This document shows, in pieces, positions 1 to 25,291 of a stretch of DNA of 64,000 nt. The translations under genes and the position numbers were made by a program. The notes under the pieces were generated by a model. The model had not been told where the DNA came from, made no database searches, and saw only the letters and a program-made list of their open reading frames with translations. The first letter of the stretch is position 1; each line of letters opens with the position of its first letter. The DNA comes from Basidiobolus meristosporus CBS 931.73 (taxonomy: Eukaryota > Fungi > Basidiobolomycota), in NCBI GenBank assembly GCA_002104905.1, contig MCFE01000107.1:1-64000 (forward strand), in the 5' to 3' direction.

Positions 1-1400
1 CTGCAGAAAGGTGTTTGAGCTTCTGCTTGCTCAGGAGCTCTACTCTGACTCCCTCAAGTTTCATCCTGCACAGTTTGGCTTTGTTCCTGGCCTCTCATTG
101 GAATATGCAGTCATATCTAGCCAAGATCACTCTCTCCAGTGCAAGTATCCCTCTGTTCTATTTGATATTACTAAGGCCTTTGATTCAGTTGACAGAAATC
201 TGCTTTGGTCCAAGTTGCAATGCTTCTCCAGTACCTCTCTCACCCTCCTTGTCAGGTCTCTGTTTCTGGATCCACAAGCAAGAATTCTGCACCCAAGTGA
301 GCAATCAGCTGTGTTCTCAGTTCCTAATGGAGTGGTTCAAGGCTCTGTGCTTGGTCCTATACTGTTTGCCATCTTCCTGAATGATTTCCCAAGACTCTCA
401 GCTGACTGCCTGGTTACTCTCTTTGCTGATGACATCAGAATATCCTCCTCCAATGTGCAACAAGACTCCCAGACCATCCACCAGTATCTGCAGAAGAATA
501 ATCTCCAGCTTTCCATTGCAAAGCAGTACCTTTGGGCTCTCCCATCAACTTGGAGAACTCCACTCTACCTGCTCAGGTTTCTGCTACATATCTTGGCTTT
601 CCTTTCCTTCCTACTGGACTAGACTCTGGAGCACACCTGAAGAAGAGAATTATCCTGGCAAGACAGGCACTCCACAAGCTACTGGCTGTTACTCCTCCTA
701 CAACTTCAGCTCCCAGCTGCCTCCTTCTACTCAAGCAGTTTGTCTTCCCTGTCCTGGAATTTGGCTTACCACTTCTCTCTCTTACTTCTAGAGACTGCAC
801 TAAGCTTGACAAGTTTGCAGTATGGTGCATTACCTCCTTGGTGCCTCATTTGCCTGAATGCCCCATACAGACATGCTATTCTTGGTGCTTTTGGGTTTAT
901 GCCCTATAAGATCAGACTTCTCTACCTTAGAACCAGATTATACCTCAGACTTCACAACTGCAACAACCCACTGATTAAGGCCTGGAAGAGAACACACCAC
1001 ACCACACCTGGCTCCTGCTGGAGAACTATACTTGGAGATCCTGAAGTCAAGAAGTTTGCTCACTATATTCTGCAGTCAGAAAAACCCAAGCTGGCCTACC
1101 TGAAGTACTTGACAGACCTTTGGCAGCAATATCTGCAGCAGCACACTCCCTTTATGATGAATATCAATCCTTATCACATTCCCCTCATTAATGTTGTTCA
1201 CAAGTCATTCTTACCTCTCTTGCTACCCCCCTTCCCACTGAACAGTGTCTTGAGCACTGAAGAACTATCATCACTTCTTATTAACTTACCTACTAATTCC
1301 CCTCAGCTACACACTCTTGTATCAAAGCTACAACAGTAGCGCTGGCTTCTTTAGTTTCAACTGAAATAAAGATTTCACCTGTTGGTGACTGTCTCCCCCC
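1..1400 (+). mobile_element. Degenerate non-LTR retrotransposon (LINE): RT and C-terminal region; the 5' part lies outside the window
   Basis: ORF 11-622 has non-LTR RT motifs QFGF, FDITKAFDSVD, GVVQGSVLGPILF and LFADD. The frame continues through frameshifted ORFs 532-909 and 740-1339. A short 3' UTR ends AATAAAGATTTCACC-TGTT-GGTGACTGTCTCCCCCC followed by TAAG. Confidence 0.9.
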
Positions 1401-1439
1401 TAAGTGGCATACTTGATTCCTGTACATTGCAACCCATAT

Positions 1440-4336
1440 TTACTCCTCATCTGTCGTCTCATCACCTCCTCTTCATCTTTGTGCATCAGAAATCCACTGC
1501 CTTGCGCTTCATGTAATGCTCAAGTACCAATCATCTTGCTCTTGAAGTTGTAATGAAATTGGTACTTTGGATGCTTCATCTACCAACGTATGCGTAATCT
1601 GGCCAAATAAGCCAATCTTACAAGTTTGACTGTCAATTACACCCTGAGCTTCAATGGAATCTTGCATGACTAACTGGTAACTAGAAACATTATTTGGTTG
1701 ATTCACCCTCCAAACTCTGGCCTTTCGCTTGGATTTCTACATAGGGATTCCACCAATTGTCGGCAATGATCACCGCCAATGCCATCTGCAAATTTAATCC
1801 AAATGCGCCACATTTGATGTTGATCAGTAACACACAAATCTGTGCCCTCCGGAACTGGCAATGCAAATGTTTCTATACTGCTCTTTTCGTATCCAAACTG
1901 GGGTGGAACCGGTAATCTTCAGATGTTCAATGCTCTGCTCCCTCAAATGGTAAGCCACTATGTCAAGCATCAGATTAAACCCAGAAAAAATAATAACACA
2001 TGCGTGCTCCTTATTTTCTTGGATTTCAAGCAGGATTTCCATGATTTTCCAAGTTTTGCCACTATGCTCTGTTCACAGTGTTGTTGGTTACACCAGTGAG
2101 GAAATCTTGGATGAATACCCTGTTGGAGTCCTCTAATGCAAGCCCTCTTTGGGCAATTGTAGGGGCGTCTTTGGTGTGTATGGCAGTTGGTGCAGAAGTA
2201 GATGGAACGTTGGATGAGCTGTCAACCTCTTCGCTATTAATCTCTTGAAGCTGCTCCTCAACCTCAACCGCAACCGCCTCAAGATCCTCATCAATCTCAG
2301 GTAGAAAATCATCCTCACTCATCTCAACATCTTGGACAATGCTAGCATCAGCCGCTTTTTTCAGTCGATTCCTCTTCCTGCTCCAGGTATACATATATGG
2401 ATGGCATGAGTACAGACGCAGATAGGTATTTGCACCCATCCAACCAACTTCCTCTGGAAGACTTGACTGCAGTTGTTTGTACTCCTGCAGCTCCTCCGGC
2501 AAGAATTGGCACAAGACAATCTGCTCTTGAATACTAGGCATGGATACTGCGCGTTCTCCAAATATTTGCAACTCTGGAACGCGTCTCAATATTAATGGGC
2601 CAAGTCTTTCTACAACCCATTCAACTAGCCTGTTTGCATTGGCCTCCTCAAGTAGGAGTCAATGGAAATCCTTTGGAATGCCTTCCCATAGATTGAATAA
2701 TGTGAAATATGAATAAAGATCCATAATCTCATTTTGGAATGGGGTGGCAGTGACAAGTATCAAGGATTCTCCATCAATTTTACTCACTGGTTTAAGCTAC
2801 CGCCTTCGTAGTTCTTAAGTGTATCTGCCTCATCGGCCACTATTTGGCCAAATTTCACATTCCATATAGGCAAATCAGGGTTCCTTGCTTCAACACATAG
2901 TGTGTGGTAGGTGGTGAGCACAATCCTCTTAGGTCTCCATATCTGACTTCTTGATAGCTTGGAATTTTCCATGAAATACATGAAGCTCTTCATTGGATAT
3001 CCTTGTTTTTGTCTTTATCTCCATCACCCAATTGAGAAGTATTCCAAGCGTGACAACAATAAGATTTGGCCTTTGCTCAGGTGTCTCCAATATGAGACTT
3101 AATATCTGCAATGTCTTTCCAAGTCCCATGGAATCGGCAAGCAATGCTCCTTTATGGATGGCCTCTGTATACATCAGCCATTGTACGCCAAATGCTTGAT
3201 GGTTCTTAAGTGGGACAGTAAGACCATGGGCACTATGCCGCAAGATATTTTCAGTCTCAGCACTTCCTTTGCCTTCCCTCTCGTGCCGCTGAGAGATTGC
3301 TGCCAATTCATTAAGAATGCGCCCTAGTAGCTGCTTTGTACTCATTTCTTCCTGACTTGGATTGGGAGGGTAAATCCAGATCTGATTATCAACATCATAG
3401 GTGAATGTAACATTTGCATTGTTGATGTATTGGATTTGGTTGCCATACTCGTTTACCACAGCAATAAAGTTTTCTCCAAGCTCCTGTATTGCTGAGTGTA
3501 CATATTGTCTTTCCCAATCACCAGTTCGCAATTTTAAACAGTAGAACTTGTTTAAAAAACTCCCATTTGGTTGGGTATAAGGTGGTTCCAATGGTGTAGG
3601 ATAGCCGCCCAGCAAGAATAAGCAATCAAATGCGTACGTAAGAACTGCCCAACCTCTTGCTGAAGGCATATTTGCCGGATTATTCAAGAATGGCCTTGTC
3701 TCCAATACTCTGGAGCATCCATTGCCATCTTTGTACGTGATTACCTCCAGCTTGCTCAGTCTTCTATTGATTGTCTCCCCACTCTTGCTTTGTATCGCTT
3801 TTTTCCCCCGTTTTTTGGCACTTTCATGTTGCCCTGAGTATTCTCTACGGCTCAGCTCAAAACCACCATATATGTAGAGATTCTTGTGGTCACTAGCACA
3901 GCAGTTGCCAATTAAAATCACCCCTTTGGCTGCCTCTGTAGTTGATATGTTGTCTGGAGTTGGGAGAACTGTCACTGTGATGTCTTCATCACCGTGTAGA
4001 TCTGCAAGGTGAATCATTTGAACCTTTGAGCTGGGCTCATAGAGTATTCCACGGCCGGATGTTTCTTCAGCTCTACGCTCATCATAAGGCGGGGATATTT
4101 TGCTGTCTTGAAAGTGCTCAACAGAATACCCTCCATATAATAGCAAGTATCTCATAGACAGGGTAATGGTCATCAAGCAATAGCTGCGTTTTGTTACACC
4201 TGCCACCGTTGCCAGGTAAACGCCAAAATTTTTCCGAATGCTCCTTGTAACTGCTGGCTTCTAATGCCATTGGGATAGGGATACAACAACTGCTGCGTGA
4301 TTTATGTGACGGTGAATACTTGATAATACACCACAA
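1440..4336 (-). pseudogene. Kelch-repeat + SNF2-family (RAD5/RAD16-like) ATPase/helicase, disrupted (copy 1)
   Basis: Kelch-like segments LLLYGGY, LYIYGGF and LFLLGGY..FYCLKLRTGDWE. SNF2 motifs LKNHQAFGVQW, LLADSMGLGKTLQIL, VADEAD and helicase-C VIIFSGF..MLDIV. The gene is broken by stops and frameshifts across ORFs 2929-4206, 2784-2993, 2062-2589, 1824-2042 and 1509-1706. Confidence 0.85.
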
Positions 4337-4461
4337 CTTGAAAGCTCTTAAGTACTACATACTTTACATATATTAGTCTGTAAATTGTCAATCTTATCAG
4401 TTCAACTTATTACTTGTCAATTCATTGATTTGGGATGGTGGAAATTCTTTATTTACTCAAG

Positions 4462-5248
4462 TTAGCCAGAGGATGGTGGTGGTGATGGGGGCACAGATAG
4501 TGATGATGGGGGAAGTGATAGCAATGAATCAACCTGTGGTATTTTTAAGATGACAATATGACTTGGTCTCTCCGCCTCCATTACAGTTTCTGGTTGGCCT
4601 ATAGTATCCCCACTCTGCTTCTCCACGTCTTCTTTGCACACTTCCATATCAACCTGCTGTGGGGGCCATTCTCATTGTTGTGGAGGATTCTGCTCTTGTC
4701 TCTTGGCTTGTGGTAGGTTCAAGGGAGGAAGTAGTATCCCCTCCAATACTGTTGCTCGCAAGTACACCTGGGTTGGAAGATGCACCCTGCTCATTGCTTG
4801 CCCTGATGCAGGCAAACTTTTCCACCATTTGTGCCACTAATGCCTCAGTAGAATGGTGGAAACTGAAATCAATCTGGGCTTGAAGTCCAGCAATATCCCG
4901 ATTTAGCTTTACAATATCACCCCTCCTCTGTTTAATCTCCTGGCACATACGTCGCAATATCTCATGGTGCAATGTTGTCCTATATTCCGGAAGCTCTTGT
5001 CAAACCTCTGACAATGCTTGGGAAACTTGGTTGACCGGCCGCCTGGTAGTGACTACAGCAACTTGCTCAGCATCATCCACGTTTGCTGCAACACCTCCTT
5101 CACGCTCCTCTTGGATTTGGCCACTTCCTTGCCCTCTTCCTCTTCCGCGCCCGGTTCCGCGTCCTCTTCCACGTCCTTGTCCCCTTCCTTGCTCTCTTTG
5201 TACTCTACCTTCACTCCTGGCATCTACCCGGCTACTGCCTGCTTCCAT
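4462..5248 (-). pseudogene. Unit ORF-B (copy 1): GR-repeat, coiled-coil-like segment and Ser/Pro-rich tail, frameshifted
   Basis: ORFs 5000-5248, 4649-4972 and 4462-4647 join into one reading that matches copy 2 (14561-15347). AT-rich spacers flank it on both sides. Confidence 0.55.
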
Positions 5249-5480
5249 GCTTCTTGTTTTTTATGAAGGATTATGTCTACTTTCTCCACTTTTATACTCA
5301 TTTGGATGATGTCGGTGGCCCATTCATCATATCTTTCCTTTGAGGTTACTGAGCTTCTTGCTCCTACGTAACATCCATCTAGCCAGTATTTGAATCATTT
5401 GATGTACACATAAGTTAACTTTATTCTGTTCTTATTAACACCCTTTTATTTTATTAAAATGCAAAACTACATTGGCAAAA

Positions 5481-5942
5481 TTATTTGGTTTCTGTAATTG
5501 TCAATTCTTGTTCCGTCTCTTGGCTGTGCGACTGTTTCTCTACCTGATCTAAGAAGTGATGCAATTGACTATCACTTAATTTATCAGTCTCTGCCTGATT
5601 CTCCTTCATACGCTTATAATCCAAATAAGCCACTTGGAGTACTTTATAGTGAGGCAAAGAAGAACTAAGCTGAAGTTTGTTTTGGAACTGCTCAATCGCA
5701 TTGGTTTGTTTTCTCCTCAGGACAACTGAGTCATCTGCCAATTTTTTCCAAGTTTTCTCCAGGTATTTGGGACTTCCAAAGGTACCACTACCAGAACTGG
5801 TAATTGTACTGCTCTTCTCGCCGCAATCTTTGTCTATAATAGACTCTTGGTCTTCCTTTGGAGCGCGAGGACTGCTATGGTAGAGGCAGCTTCCTCTTTT
5901 GGTCTTGATCCCCAAGTAGCGGTCCTTAAGCTTTCCCCTCAT
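5481..5942 (-). CDS. Unit ORF-A (copy 1), hypothetical protein of 153 aa
   Basis: Open 153-aa frame, conserved with one frameshift in copy 2 (15581-16043). No recognisable domain. Confidence 0.45.
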   Translation of the reverse strand: MRGKLKDRYLGIKTKRGSCLYHSSPRAPKEDQESIIDKDCGEKSSTITSSGSGTFGSPKYLEKTWKKLADDSVVLRRKQTNAIEQFQNKLQLSSSLPHYKVLQVAYLDYKRMKENQAETDKLSDSQLHHFLDQVEKQSHSQETEQELTITETK

Positions 5943-6401
5943 GACTTGTTTATTGTCCGTGTTGGTACTCTACTTGGTGGAGTGTCAGTGAGTGCTGTTT
6001 AACTACTAGTTGTTCTCTTCTGTCCTGTAGATTTATATTACTTTCATATACACTTACTTCATCACATTTCACTTTTGCCTCTCTTGTGACTGTACTCTGG
6101 TTTCATTCCTCAACAGCTAGACAAAACCAAGGCCACCGCATATTGGGTGCAGTGGTTTAGTGATCAAAGAGCAAGCTATTGATGCTAATATTGATTTTGA
6201 GCATATTGTCTAGGAATATCTTGGAACCAACTAGAGTAAATAGCTACTCAATAATTCACATAGTACCACTATTTGCACATCAATACTTGCTAACAACAAA
6301 GCAATGCTTTTCTATGATGTTCCATTCCCACACGGCTGTTTGTTGATAGTCCGTACAATACACAAGTGAGCGTTTAAAGTAAGCATCCACACTACTTTCT
6401 G

Positions 6402-6958
6402 GGGGTATGGTTACCGCGCACTATAAAAGTGTGTTAGGGACTCATGTAAAACTATCATGATGAAAAATAAAAGCACTTTAATACCGCGTGGCTGATGATT
6501 GATGACTCCCGCTAGACACAAGTAAATGTAGCAAGTGGGTATCCTTAAAACCTGTTGGGGTATGGTTACCACGCACTATGAAAGTGTGTTAAGGACTCAT
6601 GTAAAACTATCATGATGAAAAATAAAAGCACTTTATTACCGCGCGGCTGATGATTGATGACTCCCGCTAGACACAAGTAAATGTAGCAAGTGGGTATCCT
6701 TAAAACCTGTTGGGGTATGGTTACCGCGCACTATGAAAGTGCGTTAGGGATTCATACAAAACTAGCATGATGAAAAATAAAAGCATTTCAGTATTGCGCG
6801 GCTGATGATTGATGGCTCCCACTAGACACAAGTAGACGTAGCTAGTGGACATCCTTAAAACCTGTTGGGGTATGGCTACTGCGTACTTTCAAAGTGCGTT
6901 AGGAACTCATGTAAAACTATCATGATGAAAAATAAAAGCACTTTTGTACCACGTGGCT
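6402..6958. repeat. 155-bp tandem repeat array, ~3.6 units
   Basis: GGGGTATGG starts at 6402, 6557, 6712 and 6867 (period 155). Confidence 0.95.
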
Positions 6959-7367
6959 AAGTTTTACAATTCCCGCGGGATACATGTGCGCATAGAACAT
7001 AAGTAGTAGTTGCAATGGTGTCAAATAAAGTTTCTATTATAGCCATAATATATATTGAACTTTGGGATACACTGTATATTTGGTAAAAGCAATTGGGTTA
7101 CAGAAAATTTGTATTGGCCATGAATTTTTTTATCATATTAGGGCCGTGCAATTTATGGTGCCCAAAGCTTATCAAAATATGGGATTGTGGTCAGATTGGG
7201 ATGAATCCCATTAATTATTAGATATACATTAAAAATAAGAATTTATTAATTAAATAGTCATCAAGACTTATACAGAGCATATGGACAGTATAGGGAGACA
7301 AATATTGGCCCAGACATGCCCACTATATGAGCAGACAATGTGCCAATTGTAGGGTAAAAATATTTAT

Positions 7368-7590
7368 GGTTAGGGTGATAAGGGTTAGGAGGAGGAATTC
7401 TAACCCTAAGGGACCAGAACCAAGAATGAGAGAAAAGTAATCCAAAGGGAATTTAAAGAGTATGGGAGCAGTATGGGGGATTGCATCCCCCAAACCCCCT
7501 GCTTTTTTATTCTCTAGGGGACTGCGTCCCCCAGACCCCCTGCTCTTCTAACCTTTTCCTAGCCCTTACTATAACACCTACACCCTAACC
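7368..7590. other. Structured right terminus of unit copy 1: GC hairpins, a 10-bp inverted repeat and a telomere-like end
   Basis: GGTTAGGGTG (7368-7377) is the reverse complement of the terminal CACCCTAACC (7581-7590). Hairpins GGGGGA-TTGCA-TCCCCC (7475-7491) and GGGGAC-TGC-GTCCCC (7517-7531) are each followed by A(A/G)ACCCCCTGCT. The same structure is present in copy 2. Confidence 0.7.
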
Positions 7591-10500
7591 CACTAAAGCT
7601 TTCTGCAAAGTCATCAATAGACGGAGGTACTGCGGCATCTCTGATAGTGACAGCATTTGCAGGTTGCATGTCTTGAATGAATTGGAGCTTCCCATTCTTC
7701 TTTTTGGTCACAAACCATCTGTTAGCATAAGGTCCATGGCAAGGTTCTAGGATACCAGCTTCAATCTTCTTCTTAAGTAGGTCATGCACATCAGCTTGGA
7801 GTCCTCTAGGTAGTGGGTAAGGCTTAAATGACCAGGGTGTGTGGGGCACTGTATGAATCTTGATAGGTTTTTCAACCAATGTCTTTAAGAGTCCCATCTC
7901 CTTGTCATTATATGAGAAAACCTTATCATGCCTTATCAGGGTTTCTTCAAATAGTAAGATCTCCTCCGGTGTTAGGTCTCCATCACCAATGATCAGTTGC
8001 TTAAGTCTCTGAGGTGTAAGTTGTATATCTTCTTGTGTTCCTTCTGGTGGTCTGATGTAGTCAGCAGGTTGAGATCCATCAGTTAAAGGTGTAAGTGATG
8101 GTCTAATCTTCTGTTCTACTGTCTTGTATTTTGTGCAAACCATAGCTGTCTGCTCCTGTATACCTAATGAGCAGCTCCAACTGTTGGGGTGTATATTGTC
8201 AGGCTCCTCATCTTCTTCTATAAAAAGTTGTGTCTTCTGGCAGGCGGTATGTGTCCTCTTATTGTTGGGTGTTACCCCACAGAATGTTGACTGTAGTCCT
8301 GGGTTGGATCCTTGTATATTGTACCACACTGACCCATCAGAATAGTTGGTAGTTGTAGCCTTAGTACTGGTCTCCCATGGTCTGCCTAACAGAAGGTCAA
8401 AGTTTGCCTTCTGGCAGATAAAGAGGGGAAGCCAGACCTTGATTCCTTGTACCTCAATAGGGAACTTGTGCACTACACCATAGAGTGGACTAGATCCTGA
8501 GTTTGCATCAGTCATGTTCCATCCAATATCTCTATCAACAGGCAGTAGCTCCTTGCTTCTAAGCATCTTCCAGAAGTCTAGCGGCATAACACAAATCTCC
8601 AAACCACTGTCAATATGGCAGTCAACAGGGTCATCATAAATATACCCTTTTACCACAGCAGTTGCAACTGAGTAAAAGGTCTTATATTTGGTAGCGTTGT
8701 CATCCTTTTTGTGGTCTTCATGGTTTGTCTGGATTATATGGGTGCCCATATGTTCAACAGCTTGTCTTCTTGTTCTAAGCTTCTCATCAAAGGTCTTCCT
8801 AACAGATTGTGATACACTCATGATTTCTCCAACTGACAGAGTGAGGTTCTGCTTCAAGAGTTTCTCAGTAATCAATTGGGGGCTTGAGTAGCTTGCTATC
8901 TTTGAGGTCATCTGAAAGTGGGGTAATGGGTCTTGGGTAGGCAGTGTTCCAGGCCTCTTGTCAATAATAACCTCAGGCTCTTCAAATTGTGGTCTTCTAA
9001 GGATGGGTTTGACAGGTTCTTCAGGAAGGTGTCTCTTAGTAGCAAAGGTGTCTACTTTGTATTTTCTGTTGTCAGGGCTGTTTGGACTCACTTTATGAGT
9101 CTCAATAGGGGCATCAACAGTAATCTTTCTAGTTGCTGAGTCAGACTTCTGGAAAAGGGCTCTCATTCCGCCTCTCCGGAAATTAGTGGGAATCCTTTTT
9201 CCTTCCTTATCAGCAAGCATTCCATCAGCATCAAACTGTACTGTTCCTTCTCTAAGTAGCTGGCTAAGCTCTGAGCATTCACGTCTGGCATGCTGGGTAG
9301 AGTCACACCAAATGCAGTGTCTAGGCAGAGCTCTTTGGCCCTCAGTAGGTACCTTGGCTGAGCCATTAATCTTGAGGGCTAGCTTTTGTAGCTGTTCAGC
9401 AAGTTGGTCAATTCTGTTGGTAGTGTAGGTCTGATTGTCAGCAACAGCACTCTTTGGCTCCTTAGTTGGCTGGTCTGGCAGATTAGATGTCAGTAGTCTC
9501 ATAAAGGTAGAAGTTTGCTTTGCCTCTAGGAGTACACGTTTCATCTCTGCAAAGCAAGGAATGCCAGACTTGTCATCCTTGGCTGCATGTAGGTCAACTT
9601 TCCTTGCCAATTCCTGGGGAAGCCCTTGTGCAAGGTAAAGTGTCATGGTAAACTCAGTTATTGCCTGGGACTCTAGGAGTGGCTTGGCCATATCTTCATA
9701 TTGTTGAATGAACTCTTCAAGTGGTAACTTGGAGAGTCCCATCCTTCCAAAGTGTCTGAGGTCCTCAATTCCATAGTATATCTGGGGTCTGCCATACTCG
9801 GTCTGTAGGTAGGTCTTCATTAAGGTCCAGTCAGTCAGAGTGTCTCCTTGTCTGAGAAGCTTAGTAGTAATATCATCAGTGCAGTAGTAGGGGAAGTCTT
9901 CAGCCATTTCTTGTTCAGATAGGCTGCACATCTTGCAGAGCTTCTCCCATTTGTATATGAAGCTCTCCACATTCTTTCCATCAAACTGTGGGGCTCCATG
10001 TGAGAGTGGTAATGGCATAGAGTTCATTTTGGGTGGGTAGGTTGGTGTTGTAGTCTTGATAATATTGGTAGTCTTGCTTCAATAAATGGGTAACAGCTCA
10101 AATCTTCAGGTAAATCTTGTTGGGTCCTAGGGAGCTTGTATGAACCCCCCACGTTGGGTGCCAAATATGTGGTGGTGTATAAGTCCAGAGGGCAAAATAC
10201 GGCCAACACTTCTCAAGTGTGAATGTGTGTGGGGTGTTCACTGGGTGCGATAACCTCTGGCAAAAGCTTGCTAGGAATACTGGATCTTTTGTCTAATCTA
10301 ATGTGATGGGGGATAAAGCCTCAAGCTTGTCAAGGGAAAACTATTGAACTACAATCCCCAACTTAGTTGGTGTCTTAACAAAAGTTTATAATGGCTTCGA
10401 CGTCCTTTGAGATGACAATGTACTAAAGCTTCCAAAGTCAAAACAACTGTAAACTCCACCAACAGGGACTTGATAAGAATGCAGCTTTGACCAATAGTTA

Positions 10501-11089
10501 CAAAGACTGAAAAGTATCTTTGCCTGTACAAGAACAAACTTGGGAAAACAAACAAATATAATAAAATATACCTACTCTGAGTATTCCTCACAAGTAGTGC
10601 CTCCAAGGTCAGTTGGCTGTCAGCGTGGTTTCCTGGGAGTGTTGTCAGGTCTGAGTCAGAAAATAGTGGTAATAGGTAGCGGTGATCTCACTAATCAATA
10701 AGTCGGAATACTGGAAGAGGGATGATTTATTTTAAGGGATAGCCTCCCTTATATACTTTTTTTTACTGCTCAAATTCTTGCTAGAAAACACTTTCCGGAA
10801 GTTTCCAGAAGGTAGTAGACAACCAATCATGTCTTTGTGTACTAAAAATAGCGCAAATTCTTGGTGGATTGTTCCATGAGACATAGTAGCACCTAGCCAA
10901 TCAGGTAGTGGTAGTATGAAACCTCTGTGTCATGTGGTTGCCTCTTATGGTAGTGATATGGGGGGTTATGAAACCAAGATGGTCACGTGACATGGGCACT
11001 GTTGGGGTACTTGCCTTATAAGGTAACTATCTTATCTTGGCATCTTGGCAAGGAATAAGAATAGCTTGTGCAATGGGTTAATAGTGACA
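7591..11089 (-). mobile_element. Ty3/Gypsy LTR retrotransposon, 5' half (LTR, gag, protease, start of RT), truncated within RT
   Basis: ORF from 10027 has gag, a CCHC knuckle CIWCDSTQHARREC, protease IDSG and the RT start PYPLP..GILEP..PYANRWFVTKKKNG. The sequence stops abruptly at 7591, where unit copy 1 ends. Confidence 0.88.
10643..11089 (-). repeat. Putative 5' LTR of the minus-strand Gypsy element (447 bp)
   Basis: TGTCA...TGACA inverted termini, a TATA-like AGTATATAAGG on the minus strand (~10745-10757), and a position upstream of gag. No partner LTR or TSD is visible in the window. Confidence 0.6.
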
Positions 11090-11543
11090 AATAGTTTGTC
11101 AGGTTGCATAGTAATAATCACATAGACAAAAATAGGAAATATTGCAAATTTGGGATGATAATAATATAGGCGGGGTAATCCTTTTTAGGGAAGTGAACGC
11201 ATAAGAATGAGCACATCTGCCTGTGGGTGTCACTGTGACCCCGCTACACTGCGCGGCACCAAACCTATGATTATTCTCATCACTATATTCTAGCATCGCA
11301 CTTTCATTTGTGCCGGATGAATCCCCAACACCACCGCGCGGCACCAAATGCATGTTTATCTTCATCACCATAAAACTCTTGCACCCTTTTTTATTTAGAC
11401 TGTACCACTCTGACTTTTCTCTCTCCCTCTCCCTCTCCCACCCTTCTTGTGCAAAAAGATTAGTCTCATTGTTTATTTACCAATAGTAGCTACTACTACC
11501 TTGAGTCTGGCATACTTGATTCCTGGTACATTGCAACCCCTAT

Positions 11544-14435
11544 TTACTCCTCATCTGTCGTCTCATCAACCACCTCTTCATCTTCGTGCATCAGAGATCC
11601 ACTGCCTTGCGCTTCATGTAATTGGCTCAAGTACCGATCATCTTGCTCTTGAAGTTGTAGTGAAATTGGTACTTTGGATGCTTCATCTACCAACGTATGC
11701 ATAATCTGGCCAAATAAGCCAATCTTACAAGTTTGACTGTCAATTACACCCTGAGCTTCAATGGAATCTTGCATGACTAACTGGTAACTAGAAACATTAT
11801 TTGGTTGATTCACCCTCCAAACTCTGGCCTTTGCTTAGATTTCTACATAGGGATTCCACCAATTGTTGGCAATGATCACCACCGATGCCATCTGCAAATT
11901 TAATCCAAATGCGCCACATTTGATGTTGATCAGTAACACACAAATCTTGCCCTCCGGAACTGGCAATGCAAATGTATCTATACTGCTCTTTTGTATCCAA
12001 ACTGGGGTGGAACCGGTAATCTTCAGATGTTCAATGCTCTGCTCCCTCAAATGGTAAGCCACTATGTCAAGCATCAGATTAAACCCAGAAAAAATAATAA
12101 CACGTGCGTGCTCCTTATTTTCTTGGATTTCAAGCAGGATTTCCATGATTTTCCGAGTTTTGCCACTATGCTTGTTCACAGTGTTGTTGGTTACACCAGT
12201 GAGGAAATCTTGGATGAATACCCTGTTGGAGTCCTCTAACGCAAGCCCTCTTTGGGCAATTGTAGAGGCGTCTTTGGTGTGTATGGCAGTTGGTGCAGAA
12301 GTAGATGGAACATTGGATGAGCTGTCAACCTCTTTGCTATTAATCTCTTGAAGCTGCTCCTCAACCTCAACCGCAACCACCTCAAGATCCTCATCAATCT
12401 CTGGTAGAAAATCATCCTCACTCATCTTGATATCTTGGACAATGCTAGCATCAGCCGCTTTTTTCAGTCAATTCCTCTTCCTGCTCCAGGTATACATATA
12501 TGGATGGCATGAGTACAGATGCAGATAGGTATTTGCACCCATCCAACCGACTTCCTCTGGAAGACTTGACTGCAGTTGTTTGTACTCCTGCAGCTCCTCC
12601 GGCAAGAATTGGCACAAGACAATCTGCTCTTGAATACTAGGCATGGATACTGCATGTTCTCCAAATATTTGCAACTCTGGAACGCGTCTCAATATTAATG
12701 GGCCAAGTCTTTCTACAACCCATTCAACTAGCCTGTTTGTATTGGCCTCCTCAAGTAGGAGTTGATGGAAATCCTTTGGAATACCTTCCCATAGATTGAA
12801 TAATGTGAAATATGAATAAAGATCCATAATCTCATTTTGGAATGGGGTGGCAGTGACAAGTATCAAGGATTCTCCATCAATTTTACTCACTGCGTTTAAG
12901 CTACCGCCTTCGTAGTTCTTAAGTGTATCTGCCTCATCGGCCACTGTTTGGCCAAATTTCACATTCCATATAGGCAAATCAGGGTTCCTTGCTTCAACAC
13001 ATAGTGTGTGGTAGGTGGTGAGCACGATCCTCTTAGTCTCCATATCTGACTTCTTGATAGCTCGGAATTTTCCATGAAATACATGAAGCTCTTCATCGGA
13101 TATCCTTGTTTTTGTCATTATCTCCATCACCCAATTGAGAAGTATTCCAAGCGTGACAACAATAAGATTTGGCCTTTGCTCAGGTGTCTCCAATATGAGA
13201 CTTAATATCTGCAATGTCTTTCCAAGTCCCATGGAATCGGCAAGCAATGCTCCTTTATGGATGGCCTCTGTATACATCAGCCATTGTACGCCAAATGCTT
13301 GATGGTTCTTAAGTGGGACAGTAAGACCATGGGCACTATGCCGCAAGATATTTTCAGTCTCAGCACTTCCTTTGCCTTCCCTCTTGTGCCGCTGAGAGAT
13401 TGCTGCCAATTCATTAAGAATGCGCCCTAGTAGCTGCTTTGTACTCATTTCTTCCTGACTTGGATTGGGAGGGTAAGTCCGGATCTGATTATTGACATCA
13501 TAGGTGAATGTAACATTTGCATTGTTGATGTATTGGATTTGGTTGCCATACTTGTTTACCACAGCAATAAAGTTTTCTCCAAGCTCCTGTATTGCTGAGT
13601 GTACATATTGTCTTTCCCAATCACCAGTTTGCAATTTTAACAGTAGAACTTGTTTAAAAAACTCCCATTTGATTGGGTATAAGGTGGTTCCAATGGTGTA
13701 GGATAGCCGCCCAGCAAGAATAAGCAATCAAATGCGTATGTAAGAACTGCCCAACCTCTTGCTGAAGGCATATTTGCCGGATTATTCAAGAATGGCCTTG
13801 TCTCCAATACTCTGGAGCATCCATTGCCATCTTTGTACGTGATTACCTCCAGCTTGCTCAGTCTTCTATTGATTGTCTCCCCACTCTTGCTTTGTATCGC
13901 TTTTTTCCCCCGTTTTTTGGCACTTTCATGTCACCCTGAGTATCTCTACAGCTCAGCTCAAAACCACCATATATGTAGAGATTCTCGTGGTCACTAGCAC
14001 AGCTGTTGCCATTAAAATCACCCCTTTGGCTGCCTCTGTAGTTGATATGTTGTCTGGAGTTGGGAGAACTGTCACTGTGATGTCTTCATCACCGTGTAGA
14101 TCTGCAAGGTGAATCATTTGAACCTTTGAGCTGGGCTCATAGAGTATTCCACGGCCGGATGTTTCTTCAGCTATACGCTCATCATAAGGCGGGGATATTT
14201 TGCTGTCTTGAAAGTGCTCAACAGAATACCCTCCATATAATAGCAAGTATCTCCTAGACGGGGTAATGGTCATCAAGCAATAGCTGCATTTTGTTACACC
14301 TGCCACCGTCGCCAGGTAAACGCCAAAATTTTTCCAATGCTCCTTGTAACTGCTGGCTTCTAATGCCATTGGGATAGGGATACAACAACTGCTGCGTGAT
14401 TTATGTGACAGTGAATACTTGATAATACACCACAA
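11544..14435 (-). pseudogene. Kelch-repeat + SNF2-family ATPase/helicase, disrupted (copy 2)
   Basis: ORF 12468-13727 carries the SNF2 N-terminal ATPase (LADSMGLGKT, VADEAD, LVTATPFQN). ORF 11835-12425 carries helicase-C (GAFGLNLQMASVVII..WWNP). A CGA>TGA stop and frameshifts interrupt it. Confidence 0.87.
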
Positions 14436-14560
14436 CTTGAAAGCTCTTAAGTACTACATACTTTACATATATTAGTCTGTAAATTGTCAATCTTATCAGT
14501 TCAACTTATTACTTGTCAATTCATTGATTTGGGATGGTGGAAATTCTTTATTTACTCAAG

Positions 14561-15347
14561 TTAGCCAGAGGATGGCGGTGGTGATGGGGGCACAGATAGT
14601 GATGATGGGGGAAGTGATAGCAATGAATCAACCTGTGGTATTTTTAAGATGACAATATCACTTGGTCTCTCCGCCTCCATTACAGTTTCTGGTTGGCCTA
14701 TAGTATCCCCACTCTGCTTCTCCACGTCTTCTTCGCACACTTCCATATCAACCTGCATGGGGGCCATTCTCATTGTTGTGGAGGATTCTGCTCTTGTCTC
14801 TTGGCTTGTGGTAGGTTCAAGGGAGGAAGTAGTATCCCCTCCAATACTGTTGCTCGCAAGTACACCTGGGTCGGAAGATGCATCCTGCTCGTCGCTTGCC
14901 CTGATGCGGGCAAACTTTTCCACCATTTGTGCCACTAATGCCTCAGTAGAATGGTGGAAACTGAAATCAATCTGGGCTTGAAGTCCAGCAATATCCCTGA
15001 TTTAGCTTTACAATATCACCCCTCCTCTGTTTAATCTCCTGGCACATACGTTGCAATATCTCATGGTGCAATGTTGTCCTATATTCCGGAAGCTCTTGTC
15101 GAACCTCTGACAATGCTTGGGAAACTTGGTTGACCGGCCGCCTGGTAGTGACTACAGCAACTTGCTCAGCATCATCCACGTTTGCTGCAACACCTCCTTC
15201 ACGCTCCTCTTGGATTTGGCCACTTCCTTGCCCTCTTCCTCTTCCGCGCCCGGTTCCGCGTCCTCTTCCGCGTCCTTGTCCCCTTCCTCGCTCTCTTTGT
15301 ACTCTACCTTCACTCCTGGCATCTACCCGGCTACTGCCTGCTTCCAT
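14561..15347 (-). pseudogene. Unit ORF-B (copy 2), GR-repeat and coiled-coil-like protein, one frameshift
   Basis: ORFs 14967-15347 (GRGQGRGRGRGTGRGRGRG) and 14561-14935. Confidence 0.55.
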
Positions 15348-15580
15348 GCTTCTTGTTTTTTATGAAGGATTATGTCTCCTTTCTCCACTTTTATACTCAT
15401 TCGGATGATGTCGGTGGCCCATTCATCATATCTGTTCCTTTGAGGTTACTGAGCTTCTTGCTCCTACGTAACATCCATCTAGCCAGTATTTGAATCATTT
15501 GATGTACACATAAGTTAACTTTATTCTGTTCTTATTAACACCCTTTTATTTTATTAAAATGCAAAACTACATTGGCAAAA

Positions 15581-16043
15581 TTATTTGGTTTCTGTAATCG
15601 TCAATTCTTGTTCCGTCTCTTGGCTGTGCAACTGTTTCTCTACCTGATCTAAGAAGTGATGCAATTGACTATCACTTAATTTATCAGTCTCTGCCTGATT
15701 CTCCTTCATACGCTTATAATCAAAATAAGCCACTTGGAGTACTTTATAGTGAGGCAAAGAAGAACTAAGCTGAAGTTCGTTTCGGAACTGCTCAATCGCA
15801 TTGGTTCGTTTTCTCCTCAGGACAACTGAGTCATCTGCCAATTTTTTCCGAGTTTTCTCCAGGTATTTGGGACTTCCAAAGGTACCACTACCAGAACTGG
15901 TAATTGTACTGCTCTTCTTCGCCGCAATCTTTGTCTATAATAGACTCTTGGTCTTCCTTTGGAGCGCGAGGACTGCTATGGTAGAGGCAGCTTCCTCTTT
16001 TGGTCTTGATCCCCGAGTAGCGGTCCTTAAGCTTTCCCCTCAT
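15581..16043 (-). pseudogene. Unit ORF-A (copy 2), frameshifted
   Basis: Homologous to 5481-5942; only 15581-15841 is open from an internal start. Confidence 0.45.
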
Positions 16044-16502
16044 GACTTGTTTATTGTCCGTGTTGGTGCTCTACTCGGTGGAGTGTCAGTGAGTGCTGTT
16101 TAACTACTAGTTGTTCTCTTCTGTCCTGTAGATTTATATTACTTTCATATACACTTACTTCATCACATTTCACTTTTGCCTCTCTTGTGACTGTACTCTG
16201 GTTTCATTCCTCGACGGCTAGACAAAACCAAGGCCACCGCATATTGGGTGCGGTGGTTTAGTGATCAAAGAGCAAGCTATTGATGCTAATATTGATTTTG
16301 AGCATATTGTCTAGGAATATCTTGGAACCAACTAGAGTAAATAGTTACTCAATAATTCACATAGTACCACTATTTGCGCATCAATACTTGCTAACAACAA
16401 AGCAATGCTTTTCTATGATGTTCCATTCCCACGCGGCTGTTTGTTGATATTCCGTACAATACACAAGTGAGCGTTTAAAGTAAGCATCCACACTACTTTC
16501 TG

Positions 16503-17214
16503 GGGGTATGGTTACCGCGCACTATAAAAGTGCGTTAGGGACTCATGTAAAACTATCATGATGAAAAATAAAAGCACTTTATTACCGCGCGGCTGATGAT
16601 TGATAACTCCCGCTAGACACAAGTAAACGTAGCAAGTGGGTATCCTTAAAACCTGTTGGGGTATGGTTACCGCGCACTATGAAAGTGCGTTAAGGACTCA
16701 TGTAAAACTATCATGATGAAAAATAAAAGCACTTTATTACCGCGCGGCTGATGATTGATAACTCCCGCTAGACACAAGTAAACGTAGCAAGTGGGTATCC
16801 TTAAAACCTGTTGGGGTATGGTTACCGCGCACTATAAAAGTGCATTAGGGACTCATGTAAAACTATCATGATGAAAAATAAAAGCACTTTTTTACCGCGC
16901 GGCTGATGATTGATGACTCCCGCTAGACACAAGTAAACGTAGCAAGTGGGTATCCTTAAAACCTGTTGGGGTATGGTTACCGCGCACTATGAAAGTGCGT
17001 TAGGGATTCATACAAAACTAGCATGATGAAAAATAAAAGCATTTCAGTATTGCGCGGCTGATGATTGATGGCTCCCGCTAGACACAAGTAGACGTAGCTA
17101 GTGGACATCCTTAAAACCTGTTGGGGTATGGCTACTGCGTACTTTCAAAGTGCGTTAGGAACTCATGTAAAACTATCATGATGAAAAATTAAAGCACTTT
17201 TGTACCACGTGGCT
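16503..17214. repeat. 155-bp tandem repeat array, ~4.6 units
   Basis: GGGGTATGG starts at 16503, 16658, 16813, 16968 and 17123. Confidence 0.95.
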
Positions 17215-17846
17215 AAGTTTTACAATTCCCGCGGGATACATGTGCGCATAGAACATAAGTAGTAGTTGCGATGGTGTCCAATAAAGTTTCTATTATAGCC
17301 ATAATATATATTGAACTTTTGGATACACTTTATATTTGGTAAAAGCAATCGGGTTACAGAAAATTTGTATTGGCCATGAATTTTTTTATCATATTAGGGC
17401 CGCGCAATTTATGGTGCCCGAAGCTTATCAAAATATGGGATTGTGGTCAGATTGGGATGAATCCCATTAATTATTAGATATATATTAAAAATAACAATTT
17501 ATTAATTAAATAGTCATCAAGACTTATACAGAGCATATGGACAGTATAGGGAGACAAATATTGGCCCAGACATGCCCACCATATGAGCAGACAATGTGCC
17601 AATTGTAGGGTAAAAATATTTATGGTTAGGGTGATAAGGGTTAGGAGGAGGAATTCTAACCCTAAGGGACCAGAACCAAGAATGAGAGAAAAGTAATCCA
17701 ACGGGAATTTAAAGAGTATAAGAGCAGTATGGGGGATTGCATCCCCCAAACCCCCTGCTTTTTTATTCTCTAGGGGACTGCGTCCCCCAGACCCCCTGCT
17801 CTTCTAACCTTTTTCTAGCCCTTACTATAACACCTACACCCTAACC

Positions 17847-18370
17847 AAGAACACTTAGCCTTGTGGTTATCCCTAACCCTTCCATACCCATGGTTGTGGG
17901 TTCAAATCCTGGATCCATCAAAATTTGATTAATAAATTGATGTGTGCTCATTGGGAGATGGCTTGATCAACCATTGGGCAAAGTAAAGGCTCTGATTGGC
18001 TGAAATCCTTGAAATGCTAATTGGCCAGATTTGCCTAGTAAATTTGGCCAGTGATCGCCCAGAAATTCCTCTCAGTTCCCCCAGTCTACTGGCCATTCCG
18101 GCCACAATTCAGCTACTGCAAACCAGTATAACTTAGCTCAGATATATTCAGATACTCACTTCTCAGGCCTGGCTTTCCAGGAAACCACTCTCAGACCTAG
18201 CTAACTATGAAATATAGTACCACTCAGCTTCTCAACTCTCAGACCTGGCTCACCAGGAAGATATCTCTCAGACCTAGCTTTCTAGGAATAACTTCAGATT
18301 AACTTGGCTTCTTTAGATACTTGTCATAAGTAAATAAAGATTTCACCACTTGGTGACTTTCCTCCCCCCC
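17847..18370 (+). mobile_element. tRNA-derived SINE-like element with a LINE-type 3' tail
   Basis: A-box-like TAGCCTTGTGG at 17856-17866 and B-box GGTTCAAATCC at 17899-17909, in tRNA-like spacing. Internal CTCTCAGACCT(A/G)GCT repeats. The 3' end AATAAAGATTTCACC-ACTT-GGTGACT..CTCCCCCCCC matches the LINE tails at 1365-1400 and ~24746-24781. Confidence 0.68.
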
Positions 18371-18398
18371 CTAACCCTAGCCCTAACCCTAACCCTAA
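18369..18398 (+). repeat. Interstitial telomere-like repeat (CCCTAA)n, ~5 units, one variant CCCTAG
   Basis: Sequence CCCTAACCCTAGCCCTAACCCTAACCCTAA lies between the SINE-like tail and a 5'-truncated gag. Confidence 0.85.
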
Positions 18399-18399
18399 G

Positions 18400-21300: not shown

Positions 21301-22309
21301 ACCTTTCATCACTAGTGATGATGGTAATCACTACCTCTTTGTAATTGTGGATGTCTGCACACGTTTTGTCTTCCTCAAAGCTATCCCAGACAAGTATGCT
21401 GCCACTATTGCACAAGAACTATTGAAGCTCTTCTGCCTTTTTGGATTCCCTAAGGTCATTCAATCAGATAATGGAACAGAATTTGTGAATCACGTGATCA
21501 AAGCCCTTTGCCAGAATAGCGCCATTGATCACCGTCTGATCACTCCATATCATCCCAAAGCTAATGGACTGGCTGAAAGACATGTTCAGACCTCAATGAA
21601 CATCATCAGGAAATCTATCAAAGGTATCAAGAAGAATTGGGACAAGTACATTCCAACTGTACAATATGCTATCAACACCAAAATTGCCGCTCTACATGGA
21701 TCAACACCATTTTCCTTGATGTTTGGAAGAAGATACAACCACTTTGGAGACTACCAGAATGCAGAGTTAGCAAGTTTGAGTACAGATAAGCTAAAGAACC
21801 GGCTTGAGTACCTTACCAACATTGTCTACCCTGCTATCAGTGCCAGAAGTAAGGCCTCTCAGCAAAAGATGACTTCAGCATATGCCTCAAGACACAGGAA
21901 CAGCAGCTTTCCAGATGGGTCATATGTCATGACACTAGATCCAATCCGGCAATCTAAACTTGACCCCAAGTATGAAGGACCATTCAAGGTTGTCAGATGC
22001 ACTACTGGAGGATCTTATGTACTTCAGGATAACACTGGAGCACTGCTACCCAAAAACTTTCCACCTTCTTCACTCAAACTTATTTCTCAAGACCCAGTAA
22101 CTTCAGAATCCTATGAAGTTGAAGCTATTGTGGACCATGATGAAGAAGAACCAAATTGCCTTTATTTAGTCAAGTGGAAAGGCTATGATGCCAAACACAA
22201 CACCTGGGAACCTTACACCAACTTTGCTGATGTTGCCATTATTGATCAGTATTGGAGCCGCAGAGGAACCCAGAAGGTATCAAAAAACTCCCCTTCCAGA
22301 AGGAAGTGA
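18400..22309 (+). mobile_element. Ty3/Gypsy chromovirus-type retrotransposon (gag-PR-RT-RH-INT-chromodomain), 5'-truncated, two in-frame TGA stops
   Basis: Protease ALLDAGS; RT PCLDPRPLN, FSKLDLKDAYH and FVDDVII; RNase H VATDASNVGLGAVL; integrase H..H/C..C, IDLAGP and SDNGTEF; chromodomain YEVEAIVDH..YLVKWKGY...NTWEP. The gag begins mid-domain at ~18400. Confidence 0.93.
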
Positions 22310-22717
22310 TGTTGCGCATCAACATTTAAAACTTAGCCAATTTCACTCCGTTTGAAAATCTAGTACCCTAACTGATTTTCCCTAACCCAAACATAACAAA
22401 CCCCAGTTACAGTTTATTTTATCCCACCTCAGAATCTATTTTTAGCTATCACACCTGATCTATTTTCAAATGGTCATTACGTTATCAACCTATCTGCCAA
22501 GCCTTCCCAGGTGATTAGTCATCTGAGATCTATCCAACCATGGTGCAGTTGCCAAGACATCAGTTGATTGATGATGTAATTTTCATTTATCTTACGCACC
22601 TATGAGCACCCAAATTGATTTCAATCAATCCAGTCCCTTGGCACTTACTAATTCAACTTGATCAGAATAGTATAAATAAAGTTTACTGAACCTTTTGGTT
22701 TAGTGTGTGTCTCAACA
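22310..22717 (+). repeat. LTR-like segment related to the Copia LTR at 23690-24284, in opposite orientation
   Basis: Starts TGTTG right after a purine-rich AGAAGGAAGTGA. The first ~230 bp align with the reverse complement of 24056-24284. It has TATAAATAAA at ~22670 and a possible CAACA end at 22713-22717. Confidence 0.55.
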
Positions 22718-22926
22718 AAATTAAGATTCTGTCTCAGCAAAAATAAGAATCCAACAATTCCATTCTAGTTTCTATCCAAGCCTAGTATATCTAGCACTCC
22801 AAAGAACACCAAGCCTAGCCTGCCTAGCAAACAAATATCATTGTCTTTATAGCCAACCCAGCTATATCCACGACCAATATTAGATCAGAATCTTTCTGCT
22901 AATATTTCCACCACTCTCTGACAATT

Positions 22927-24786: not shown

Positions 24787-25291
24787 ATAAGTGTGGGTAT
24801 ACAGAAGGGCTCAGATTTGCTACTTGTACCTATTGCAAGGATTATTAGAGTGATCAATCCTAAGAAACTAAAGCATACTCAAATGGCTTATTACAAATAA
24901 ATGTTGCATCTACACTATGACAGTTGCTTGACAGAAAGCACAAGGAGTACTGCTGGAATATATATGAGCAGGTGCACAAATATGGGGGTTTTGTACAACT
25001 TTGCAAAGTCTAATAATCTAAGTGCCAGGTATTTTGACAAGACTGCTCAAGACAATACGTAACTGAGAGCTCTGACCTGGAGTAATAAAGCTTTTGTACC
25101 AAGCTAATGATAATATTTGGAACACAAGTTTGCTTTGGCACTTGGAAGTATTTACGCTGGCTACTGTCAGTATTGGCAAATTTTGAGACTTTGCGATGCT
25201 CTAGAGTGTTCATTTTATGCCATTCTCACAGGCACTGAAAATTTCCAGTCGGTGGTAGCAATATTTATTTCATGTAATATCCGCAAATATA

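Follow-up and report, generated by a model that had tools for sequence, protein, structure and literature searches.

The repeated unit and its genes

The subject of this study is a window of 64,000 nucleotides (nt) from the fungus Basidiobolus meristosporus CBS 931.73 (assembly GCA_002104905.1, contig MCFE01000107.1, positions 1-64,000), which contains two copies of a unit encoding a Kelch-like/SNF2 protein. This unit is best explained as a chromosome-end-specific, gene-carrying repeat of Basidiobolus. Positions 1405-6944 and 11508-17044 of the window are 97.4% identical over 5548 nt, and positions 6402-7590 and 16658-17846 are 97.5% identical. The differences between the two copies amount to about 17 indels of one or two bases and one extra unit of a 155-bp tandem array. 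Both copies terminate at the identical nucleotide (7590 and 17846), where the plus strand reads ...ACACCTACACCCTAACC (also written ...CACCCTAACC). The DNA past this right end is unrelated in the two cases, being a truncated Ty3/gypsy pol open reading frame (ORF) at copy 1 and the 5' end of a tRNA-derived short interspersed nuclear element (SINE) at copy 2. An initial annotation, made from the sequence alone, had described the duplication and its common right-end nucleotide next to unrelated neighbors, and this description is borne out.

From left to right, the window contains a long interspersed nuclear element (LINE), copy 1, a gypsy fragment, copy 2, the SINE, retroelement debris extending to about 25 kb, and ordinary genes (Table 1). 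This order fits a chromosome tip lying to the left of the window. Copies of the LINE at positions 1-1404 also cap other truncated units. The right ends of the two copies are ends of the unit, as first annotated, but the left ends proposed at 1405 and 11508 had to be rejected. The truncation of copy 1 is capped by a LINE tail, and copy 2 extends to 11247 with sequence that is shared with another locus, L004.

All of the coding capacity of the unit is on the minus strand. Read from its centromere-proximal end, the unit is composed of one TTAGGG, a terminal module of about 125 nt, the 155-bp array, three genes, and further repeats. The array is thus situated between the genes and the fixed end, with 3.7 units in copy 1 and 4.6 in copy 2. 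The genes are directed towards the telomere and follow each other in the order ORF3 (153 codons), the GR/RGG-rich coiled-coil protein and the 942-codon Kelch-like/SNF2 protein. All three are intronless; the neighboring host genes have introns. The GR-repeat protein, third ORF and tandem array listed in the initial annotation are present in both copies, and its statement that the unit has neither transposase nor reverse transcriptase (RT) agrees with the Pfam search, which found no RT, transposase or Rep within the unit. The terminal module of copy 1 contains degenerate telomere-like hexamers and two G5-N3-G5 blocks or hairpins. An Rfam search of positions 11000-18500 at E <= 1 gave no match, no ribozyme and not even the tRNA head of the SINE. 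A telomere-like near-palindrome, GGTTAGGG..GGGTTAGG..GAATTC..CTAACCCTAAGGG, is found at 7366-7412 and 17622-17668, about 180-225 nt inside the fixed end. It is possibly a site for telomere-repeat-binding proteins, recalling the TTAGGG/Tbf1 sites of yeast subtelomeric elements.

Table 1. Coordinates of the LINE, the two unit copies and the elements adjoining them in the window
Feature	Position	Strand	Remarks
LINE 3' part (RT), telomeric	1-1404	+	RVT_1 E 1e-20; ends CCCCCCTAA at 1396-1404; caps eroded distal end of copy 1
Unit copy 1, distal, probably younger	1405-7590	-	Unit positions 1-6339; truncated 35 nt past the SNF2 stop codon
Kelch-like propeller + SNF2 ATPase pseudogene, copy 1	1440-4270	-	9 indels that shift the frame and 1 stop, against the 942-codon consensus
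GR/RGG-repeat + coiled-coil ORF, copy 1	4462-5248	-	Frameshifted
Third ORF, copy 1	5481-5942	-	153 codons, open; no family match
155-bp tandem array, copy 1	6402-6976		About 3.7 units
Conserved terminal module, copy 1	7464-7590	-	Ends CCCTAACC on the plus strand at 7583-7590
Ty3/gypsy element, outside the unit	7591-11246	-	Inserted in distal repeats of copy 2; gag-pol ORF 7559-10027 with DUF4100; broken inside pol at 7591
Unit copy 2, proximal, probably older	11247-17846	-	6600 nt; distal side interrupted by the gypsy insertion
Distal ~92-bp repeat region (start), beyond the SNF2 gene	11247-11440		Longer in L004
Kelch-like + SNF2 pseudogene, copy 2	11544-14371	-	3 frameshifts and 3 stops, none at copy 1 sites
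GR/RGG-repeat ORF, copy 2	14561-15347	-	One frameshift
Third ORF, copy 2	15581-16043	-	Broken by one frameshift
155-bp tandem array, copy 2	16503-17214		4.6 units
Conserved terminal module, copy 2	17720-17846	-	Ends CCCTAACC at 17839-17846
tRNA-derived SINE, full-length	17847-18399	+	LINE-type 3' tail, ~4.5 CCCTAA repeats; copy 2 joined to its 5' end

The majority consensus of the Kelch-like/SNF2 gene can be read from the first ATG through 942 codons without a shift of frame. The one stop in it is at a site that reads CGA, TGA or CAA among the copies, which corresponds to a CpG codon hit on either strand. All 12 copies of the family to which the window copies belong (family A), as well as the copy of a sister family (family B), are truncated or broken by frameshifts or stops. 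The breaks of family A are each private to one copy and the consensus frame is continuous, so that an interpretation of the breaks as introns was rejected. The single-base frameshifts could be assembly indel errors; the stop codons, transposable element insertions and truncations are independent of such errors. Open frames that remain include one in L006 of 634 codons, up to the polymorphic CpG stop, and an intact GR/RGG protein of 261 codons with a coiled-coil-like middle in L007. CpG transitions make up 28% of all substitutions, and CpG is present at 0.39 of expectation in the unit copies. This suggests the decay of cytosine-methylated, silenced repeats. All copies are now decaying neutrally, with heavy CpG-transition damage.

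The motor part of the protein matches the Pfam families SNF2-rel_dom (E 1.1e-31) and Helicase_C (E 1.2e-12 to 5.9e-14). Pfam also gives ResIII, and no RecQ-specific domain. The catalytic motifs in the consensus and in family B are GLGKT (motif I), VADEAD (motif II) and QAKA(R/C)VWRVNQ (motif VI). They deviate from the canonical SNF2 motifs in having DEAD for DExH, and A, W and N in motif VI. The DEAD of motif II is present in the window copies and in family B, and six copies have N for the first D owing to a G-to-A change. Deviant motifs had been noticed earlier, and VADEAD stands; motif VI was then given as QAKGRVWRVNQ, but the consensus reads QAKARVWRVNQ, with both arginines present. The motor is most closely related to SNF2 proteins of the prokaryote type (24-33% identity). 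The best solved match of the N-terminal ATPase lobe is the SNF2 core of Sulfolobus SSO1653 (1z63, E 1e-19), and the Helicase_C lobe is best matched by eukaryotic remodellers.

The N-terminal 325 residues have no homolog outside Basidiobolus among 1.84 billion cluster representatives, and this is not an ordinary conserved cellular gene; the initial annotation knew of no standard Kelch-SNF2 cellular gene. No full-length Kelch-SNF2 protein was found in databases, and no Kelch-SNF2 relatives in the viral contigs of IMG/VR. The N-terminal part is a predicted Kelch-like propeller, an assignment that rests on sub-threshold Pfam scores and on feature and structure matches in the ESM Atlas. Kelch models of Pfam score 19-23 bits against a cut-off of 50, and Kelch_4 scores 22.3 against 21.6 with no single stretch passing. 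All ten structure neighbors of the N-terminus in the Atlas are Kelch propellers, with template modelling (TM) scores of 0.49-0.55, and the feature matches are also Kelch. A single-sequence AlphaFold2 model of the longest open copy (P0236, 634 residues) had a predicted local distance difference test (pLDDT) score of 31 and was not used for fold searches. The Kelch-SNF2 fusion originally proposed is sound in its SNF2 half and putatively Kelch-like in the other, and both copies of the gene in the window are pseudogenes, broken at different places. By analogy with Y' and RecQ-type telomere-linked helicases, for which such a role is thought likely, the intact SNF2 protein may once have acted on DNA or chromatin at chromosome ends.

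Copies at other chromosome ends and their fixed proximal terminus

Gene models that are 91-94% identical to the SNF2 ORF are present in the assembly. These models and their cluster members gave ten further family-A loci (L001-L010). The census stands at 12 long copies on 11 contigs and two short fragments, and the gene model P0358 marks one more copy. More distant relatives, found with a C-terminal query that gave two at about 53% identity, are family B and one in B. ranarum. The visible part of the unit spans at least 7.7 kb in family A; in family B it reaches about 9.5 kb or more.

All ten external loci are at contig ends. Their unit starts are 7-15 kb from the end, and one unit runs off it. 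The SNF2 sense strand is directed at the contig end in every one of these loci and also at the family-B and B. ranarum loci. Arrays of TTAGGG terminate L001, L005 and L006, as well as the family-B locus L011. These positions support the proposal of a Y'-like subtelomeric element, all of whose copies are dead. The label carries the caveat that the anatomy of the junctions resembles telomeric retroelement addition more closely than Y'-type recombination.

Two copies 10 kb apart and in the same orientation could also have arisen by local segmental duplication of an ordinary conserved gene. That origin has a negligible probability, given that there are at least 12 copies on 11 contigs, that a broken gypsy element separates the two copies, and that the propeller has no homolog outside the genus. 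Furthermore, in a shared region of 3 kb the distance between copies 1 and 2 is 1.7%, compared to 1.3% between copy 2 and L007, which is on another contig (copy 1 to L007, 1.5%; family maximum, 6.4%). Because copy 2 is nearer to L007 than to copy 1, the window copies are two separate additions rather than a local duplication. The variable sites of family A are star-like, with 286 singleton and 130 shared sites.

A search with the first bases of the unit found 13 starts, belonging to 11 long copies and the two fragments. All 13 have the form (GG)TTAGGG|TGTAGGTGTTATAG, in which a single TTAGGG is followed by TGTAGGTG. The proximal end is constant within 0-3 nt despite 12 different flanks, so that the fixed right end inferred from the two window copies applies to every start found. 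Three of the 13 starts have single-base variants of the hexamer, about as many as a divergence of 3-5% predicts. In nine of the 12 cases the flank is the 5' end of a telomeric element of LINE or SINE type, cut at varied points. These nine comprise LINEs truncated at LINE positions 2296, 2943 and 3300, two retroelement tail fragments of 33 nt (LINE) and 76 nt that directly abut the unit start, a full-length SINE (copy 2 and L002), two points in the 5' region of a related LINE, and a stack of short fragments (L004). At the other three, the flank is unambiguously non-telomeric DNA that had been broken: gypsy pol at copy 1, an older unit's SNF2 gene, in its motif I region, at L007, and near-unique DNA, 337 bp past a Lactamase_B gene, at L010.

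All 11 long-copy junctions of family A have 1-1.5 telomere repeats and never a longer tract. The extra repeats at these junctions (0-0.5) equal those at the LINE/SINE junctions of the same stacks. The two unit-start fragments, which cover positions 1-53 and about 8-70, halt at a G-rich hairpin block of the terminal module (fold z = -3.0) and continue directly into a LINE tail. We estimate the chance of finding two fragments of 53-70 nt among 13 copies at about 0.01, if a unit of more than 6 kb is eroded uniformly. The fragments look like products of abortive synthesis or of template jumps.

Family B is represented by a unit at the end of the largest contig (L011 on MCFE01000001.1), which has a true telomere. 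On its proximal side there are 2.5 TTAGGG units and a LINE that is cut off at position 2749. Its protein is 52% identical to that of family A over 833 residues, in one frame with 13 stops. Beyond the SNF2 gene there are co-oriented ORFs, an opposite-strand fragment of an ABCA transporter, a LINE, and the telomere. The ABCA-type fragment (L011:16314-17153, in C-strand sense) encodes nucleotide-binding domain 1 (E 4e-36 to ABCA4). Along 129 residues it aligns collinearly with ABCA1/ABCA4, interrupted by a single in-frame stop but by no intron, and it may have arrived by 5' transduction or by translocation.

In B. ranarum (L012), a terminal module with 79% identity and a Helicase_C piece with 56% identity are positioned less than 2 kb from a contig end, beyond ordinary genes. 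The coding DNA of families A and B is 67-69% identical, compared to 88% for their first 127 nt. The blocks that are invariant in the alignment of the modules are GGGT-TAG...GTAAGGG, GGGGGTCTGGGGG, GCAGTC and AAGCAG-GGGT-TGGGGGATGCAATCCCC. The terminus is conserved far above the genes, as is expected of a cis-acting signal. Selection may have preserved this module of about 125 nt in both families and both species.

Such a module would also suit a recombination site, and a DNA element driven by its own recombinase, such as a Crypton-like element, has to be considered. A tyrosine recombinase encoded by the unit would exchange strands in a TTAGGG core, between the att-like terminal module and a residual TTAGGG, and a critically short end would thereby gain the unit together with whatever cap lies beyond it. 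A core of 6 bp suits tyrosine recombinases. A candidate enzyme is the 164-codon ORF at L011:13896-14390, whose Atlas features score 0.93-0.95 to unnamed viral clusters (Preplasmiviricota, Uroviricota) and to clusters carrying Phage_integrase, and which by eye has an ending like H-x-x-x-T-A-R-x-x-Y. Pfam and PDB sequence searches with this ORF were negative, however, and a tblastx comparison of the distal region of family B found no relic of it in the 12 family-A copies or the window. Site-specific integration moreover predicts a fixed distal end, which was not observed among the sampled copies; the two fragments of 53-70 nt joined to LINE tails would also be left unexplained. This origin is unlikely. 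The suggestion in the initial annotation that the genes are cargo of a larger element finds some support in the longer unit of family B, with its extra distal ORFs and the recombinase-like one among them, but not in the family-A copies recovered, where these are absent. Pfam recognizes nothing in ORF3, in the GR protein or in the extra ORFs of family B.

Variable distal ends and addition to uncapped ends

The distal ends of the units are as varied as the proximal ends are constant. Relative to the 6600-nt unit, truncations were found at 4527, 4657, 4756, 4761, 5593, 5649 and 6339. The partners at these truncations are tails of the LINE, of LINE family X (which has an RT), of a 780-bp ORF1-only-type element, or of the SINE. 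None of these truncation sites shows a telomere motif in the unit sequence, and no distal junction is common to any two of the ten copies compared. The longest copy of family A, L004, continues for about 1.3 kb beyond the SNF2 stop, through the ~92-bp repeat and up to the attached LINE-X. The ORFs past the unit in ten loci are of LINE or copia type, and no distal fourth gene or recombinase relic was found in family A.

LINE-X (RVT_1 E 4e-21) ends in a 3' tail of the type found in the first LINE and caps eroded units at L009:12174-15170, L008:14617-16205, L004:14449-15125 and L002:4430-4876. The 780-bp element also caps eroded units, at L003 (11053-11842) and four other loci. Several copies are interrupted by other elements: PIF/Harbinger (L001, L004), copia (L008, L010), another long terminal repeat (LTR) element (L009), a solo LTR (L004), and gypsy (copy 2). 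The same PIF/Harbinger-type transposon (DDE_Tnp_4, E 4e-24) is found at L001:2123-4393 and L004:5740-9179, 96-98% identical and at different positions of the unit.

The prevalence of telomeric LINE/SINE-type 5' ends among the flanks (nine of 12) might be due to busy neighbors around static units. The units would have spread once, within larger subtelomeric blocks, and endonuclease-bearing LINEs and SINEs would later have hit the boundary TTAGGG; the LINE does have an apurinic/apyrimidinic-endonuclease-like domain. Several observations make this improbable. Three of the flanks consist of broken DNA that is not telomeric. In all copies, the internal TTAGGGTTAG motifs are free of LINE/SINE insertions, and where distal junctions were sampled, the same LINEs and SINEs are joined to naked, eroded ends that have no telomere motif. 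Finally, the LINEs on the proximal side of units are the older ones: they differ from the LINE consensus by 1.61%, compared to 0.65% for the distal LINEs (one-sided Mann-Whitney p = 0.012).

In the window, the SNF2 gene of copy 1 is 0.8% from the family consensus and that of copy 2 is 1.5%. These distances are consistent with proximal material being older and copy 1 being younger than copy 2. The stack probably formed in four steps. First, a gypsy element, whose LTR begins with TG at 11246, would have entered the distal repeats of copy 2. The chromosome would then have broken or eroded into the gypsy pol, and copy 1 would have been added at the broken pol. Copy 1 would subsequently have lost its outer part, and a LINE would have capped the remainder. 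Proximal of the telomere tract of the SINE, positions 18400-24790 contain, in this order, a 5'-cut chromodomain Ty3/gypsy element, a copia-type gag and, from an older LINE, a 3' fragment (24284-24784) that is 89% identical to the LINE at 1-1404. This region looks like an earlier chromosome end that was buried by later additions.

Taken together, the junctions show that the unit has been joined repeatedly, by the same terminal nucleotide, onto chromosome ends without a cap. The ends that received it were 5' ends of telomeric LINEs and SINEs, breaks in a gypsy element and in an older unit, and near-unique DNA. After joining, the copies were eroded from the outer side to varied extents and were re-capped by telomeric LINE/SINE tails or telomere repeats. 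The overall reading that we tentatively favor, at just under an even chance, is that of a Y'-like, end-specific, gene-carrying element that is appended to uncapped ends from a defined template end. In every addition, the template would be an RNA with a fixed terminus, of C-strand sense (antisense to the genes), and its last bases would be ...CACCCUAA(CC). The RT of the resident telomeric LINEs would do the copying, primed by the naked 3' end of the chromosome. To our knowledge, LINE reverse transcriptases are the only polymerases that act in this manner at such ends.

Four features of the junctions favor copying from a template end. The telomere repeat counts at unit junctions match those at LINE/SINE junctions, three flanks have no telomere sequence of their own, the tail fragments of 33 and 76 nt run directly into the unit start, and the two fragments of the unit start break off after 53 and about 70 nt, where a LINE tail follows. 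The RNA-template and LINE-RT step, taken on its own, is possible but somewhat doubtful.

Recombination of the Y' type would account for the same junctions differently. Residual telomere repeats would anneal to an interstitial TTAGGG at a unit boundary elsewhere, and the end would be copied outward by break-induced replication or gene conversion. The location, the outward gene, the helicase content and the tandem stacking with a telomere unit in between all parallel Y'. Early template switching during break-induced replication could give the short fragments, and the family-B junction, with its 2.5 repeats, also suits this mechanism. Yet a homology of 6-9 nt is very little for strand invasion, and the long-copy junctions of family A (11 of 11) have 1-1.5 repeats only. 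Donors that are mostly truncated should spread their distal junctions, none of which is shared among the ten copies, and the far stronger conservation of the terminal 125 nt relative to the coding DNA would find no explanation in plain homology copying. Such recombination is a distinctly unlikely source of the copies.

Copying from a template end has its own difficulties. The three genes are antisense to the RNA required for end-primed reverse transcription, and a C-strand-sense transcript of the unit is so far hypothetical. A 3' stem-loop module, AGTCACC-loop-GGTGA-AATCTTTATTT, is common to all four local telomeric retroelement families (LINE, LINE-X, SINE and the 780-bp family), and the unit does not have it, which is a difficulty for its recognition by the LINE RT. 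The tyrosine-recombinase-like ORF of family B hints at a DNA-level mechanism of the element's own. Nine of the 12 flanks, those of LINE/SINE type, could arise from later LINE insertion into the junction TTAGGG. The sample is biased to copies long enough to have a called SNF2 or Kelch gene model. Two results speak against a present function: no intact copy was found among those recovered, and the ratio of nonsynonymous to synonymous substitution (dN/dS) relative to the consensus is 0.66 for the SNF2 gene and about 1.05 for each of the other two ORFs.

A further possibility, which we consider rather unlikely but still worth stating, is that the unit belongs to an undescribed class of chromosome-end elements. 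Members of such a class would be large and non-autonomous and would be copied onto naked ends via a C-strand-sense RNA with a telomere-complement end. They would borrow the RT of a co-resident LINE, and would bring with them a telomere-directed SNF2 remodeller, an RGG protein and probably a recombinase. If so, the class would be a hybrid of Y'-type helicase blocks and HeT-A-type telomeric retroelements.

Comparison with other chromosome-end elements

The helicase genes of yeast Y' elements point outward at chromosome ends. Like the Saccharomyces Y' (Y'-Help1), the Basidiobolus unit is multi-copy, several kilobases long, found only at ends, sometimes in tandem, and has a telomere repeat on its centromere side. 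Both contain a large ORF of a helicase superfamily that is transcribed toward the telomere, and many copies of both are degenerate. The motors are different, however, that of Basidiobolus being SNF2 with a Kelch-like propeller and having no sequence relation to the Y' helicase. Unlike Y', the Basidiobolus unit has two more genes and two tandem arrays, a terminal module that is conserved across families and species, and, in family A, one boundary telomere unit instead of variable tracts. Its junctions resemble end-primed copying and not homologous recombination. 'Y'-like' is thus an analogy of place and content, not of homology.

The RecQ telomere-linked helicase (TLH) regions of other fungi are alike in place, orientation, size and content (PMC1635262; bioRxiv 10.1101/2024.02.27.582403). 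The TLH genes too form a helicase-superfamily family a few kilobases from the telomere repeats at many ends, often pseudogenised. They are RecQ genes, whereas the Basidiobolus gene is SNF2, and their regions have been described as subtelomeric duplications. For TLH, we know of no report of a discrete, nucleotide-exact terminus on unrelated broken ends. The Basidiobolus unit is a helicase-bearing chromosome-end repeat that is built on a different motor, and is a member of neither Y' nor TLH. The literature searched yielded no SNF2-based telomere-linked element and nothing on the chromosome ends of Basidiobolus.

Telomeric non-LTR retrotransposons, such as HeT-A/TART of Drosophila, SART/TRAS of Bombyx, MoTeR of Magnaporthe, FoTeR of Fusarium (a telomere-specific element; PMC12857005) and the local LINEs and SINEs, share with the unit a one-way orientation and a fixed centromere-side end that carries the telomere-repeat complement, combined with variable outer truncation. 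The unit stacks head-to-tail with the local ones, and very short abortive fragments and chimeric junctions are further points of likeness. Unlike these elements, the unit has no RT or gag, and its genes are on the strand opposite to the presumed template. It also differs from the local LINE, SINE and ORF1-only families in not having their shared 3' stem-loop module. The terminons of bdelloid rotifers, with their Athena Penelope-like elements, contain the Athena RT, co-oriented ORFs and hammerhead ribozyme motifs (PMC6431247). They are similarly large, gene-carrying and telomere-confined, and their 3' ends have short complements of the telomere repeat. In contrast, there is no RT in the parts of the Basidiobolus unit that are seen, nor a ribozyme recognized by Rfam at positions 11000-18500.

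Repeats of the Y' and RecQ TLH kinds are a recurrent, poorly understood feature of telomeres, and their origin from mobile elements has long been suspected. In this early-diverging fungus the same design is realized with an SNF2 translocase and an orphan propeller, and the exact junctions allow its history to be read. Repeated additions of a discrete element are interleaved with additions of telomeric LINEs and SINEs, in a genome with ordinary TTAGGG caps. The findings support a convergent recruitment of DNA motors to chromosome ends, and the conserved terminal module is a testable candidate for a cis-acting signal. Copying through RNA, if true, would link Y'-like blocks mechanistically to telomeric retrotransposons. 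The value of the system is limited in that all copies seen are dead and the element is so far confined to one genus; the fungus is culturable.

Two further features of the window lie among its ordinary genes. Positions 31774-33981 contain two head-to-head uricase genes, which form an inverted repeat of about 530 nt with 73% identity. At positions 47700-63000, seven or more units of about 1.9-2.4 kb are repeated in tandem, with 80-97% mutual identity. Each of these units encodes a protein with Chitin_bind_1 and polysaccharide deacetylase domains, and the array is a recently expanded chitin deacetylase cluster.

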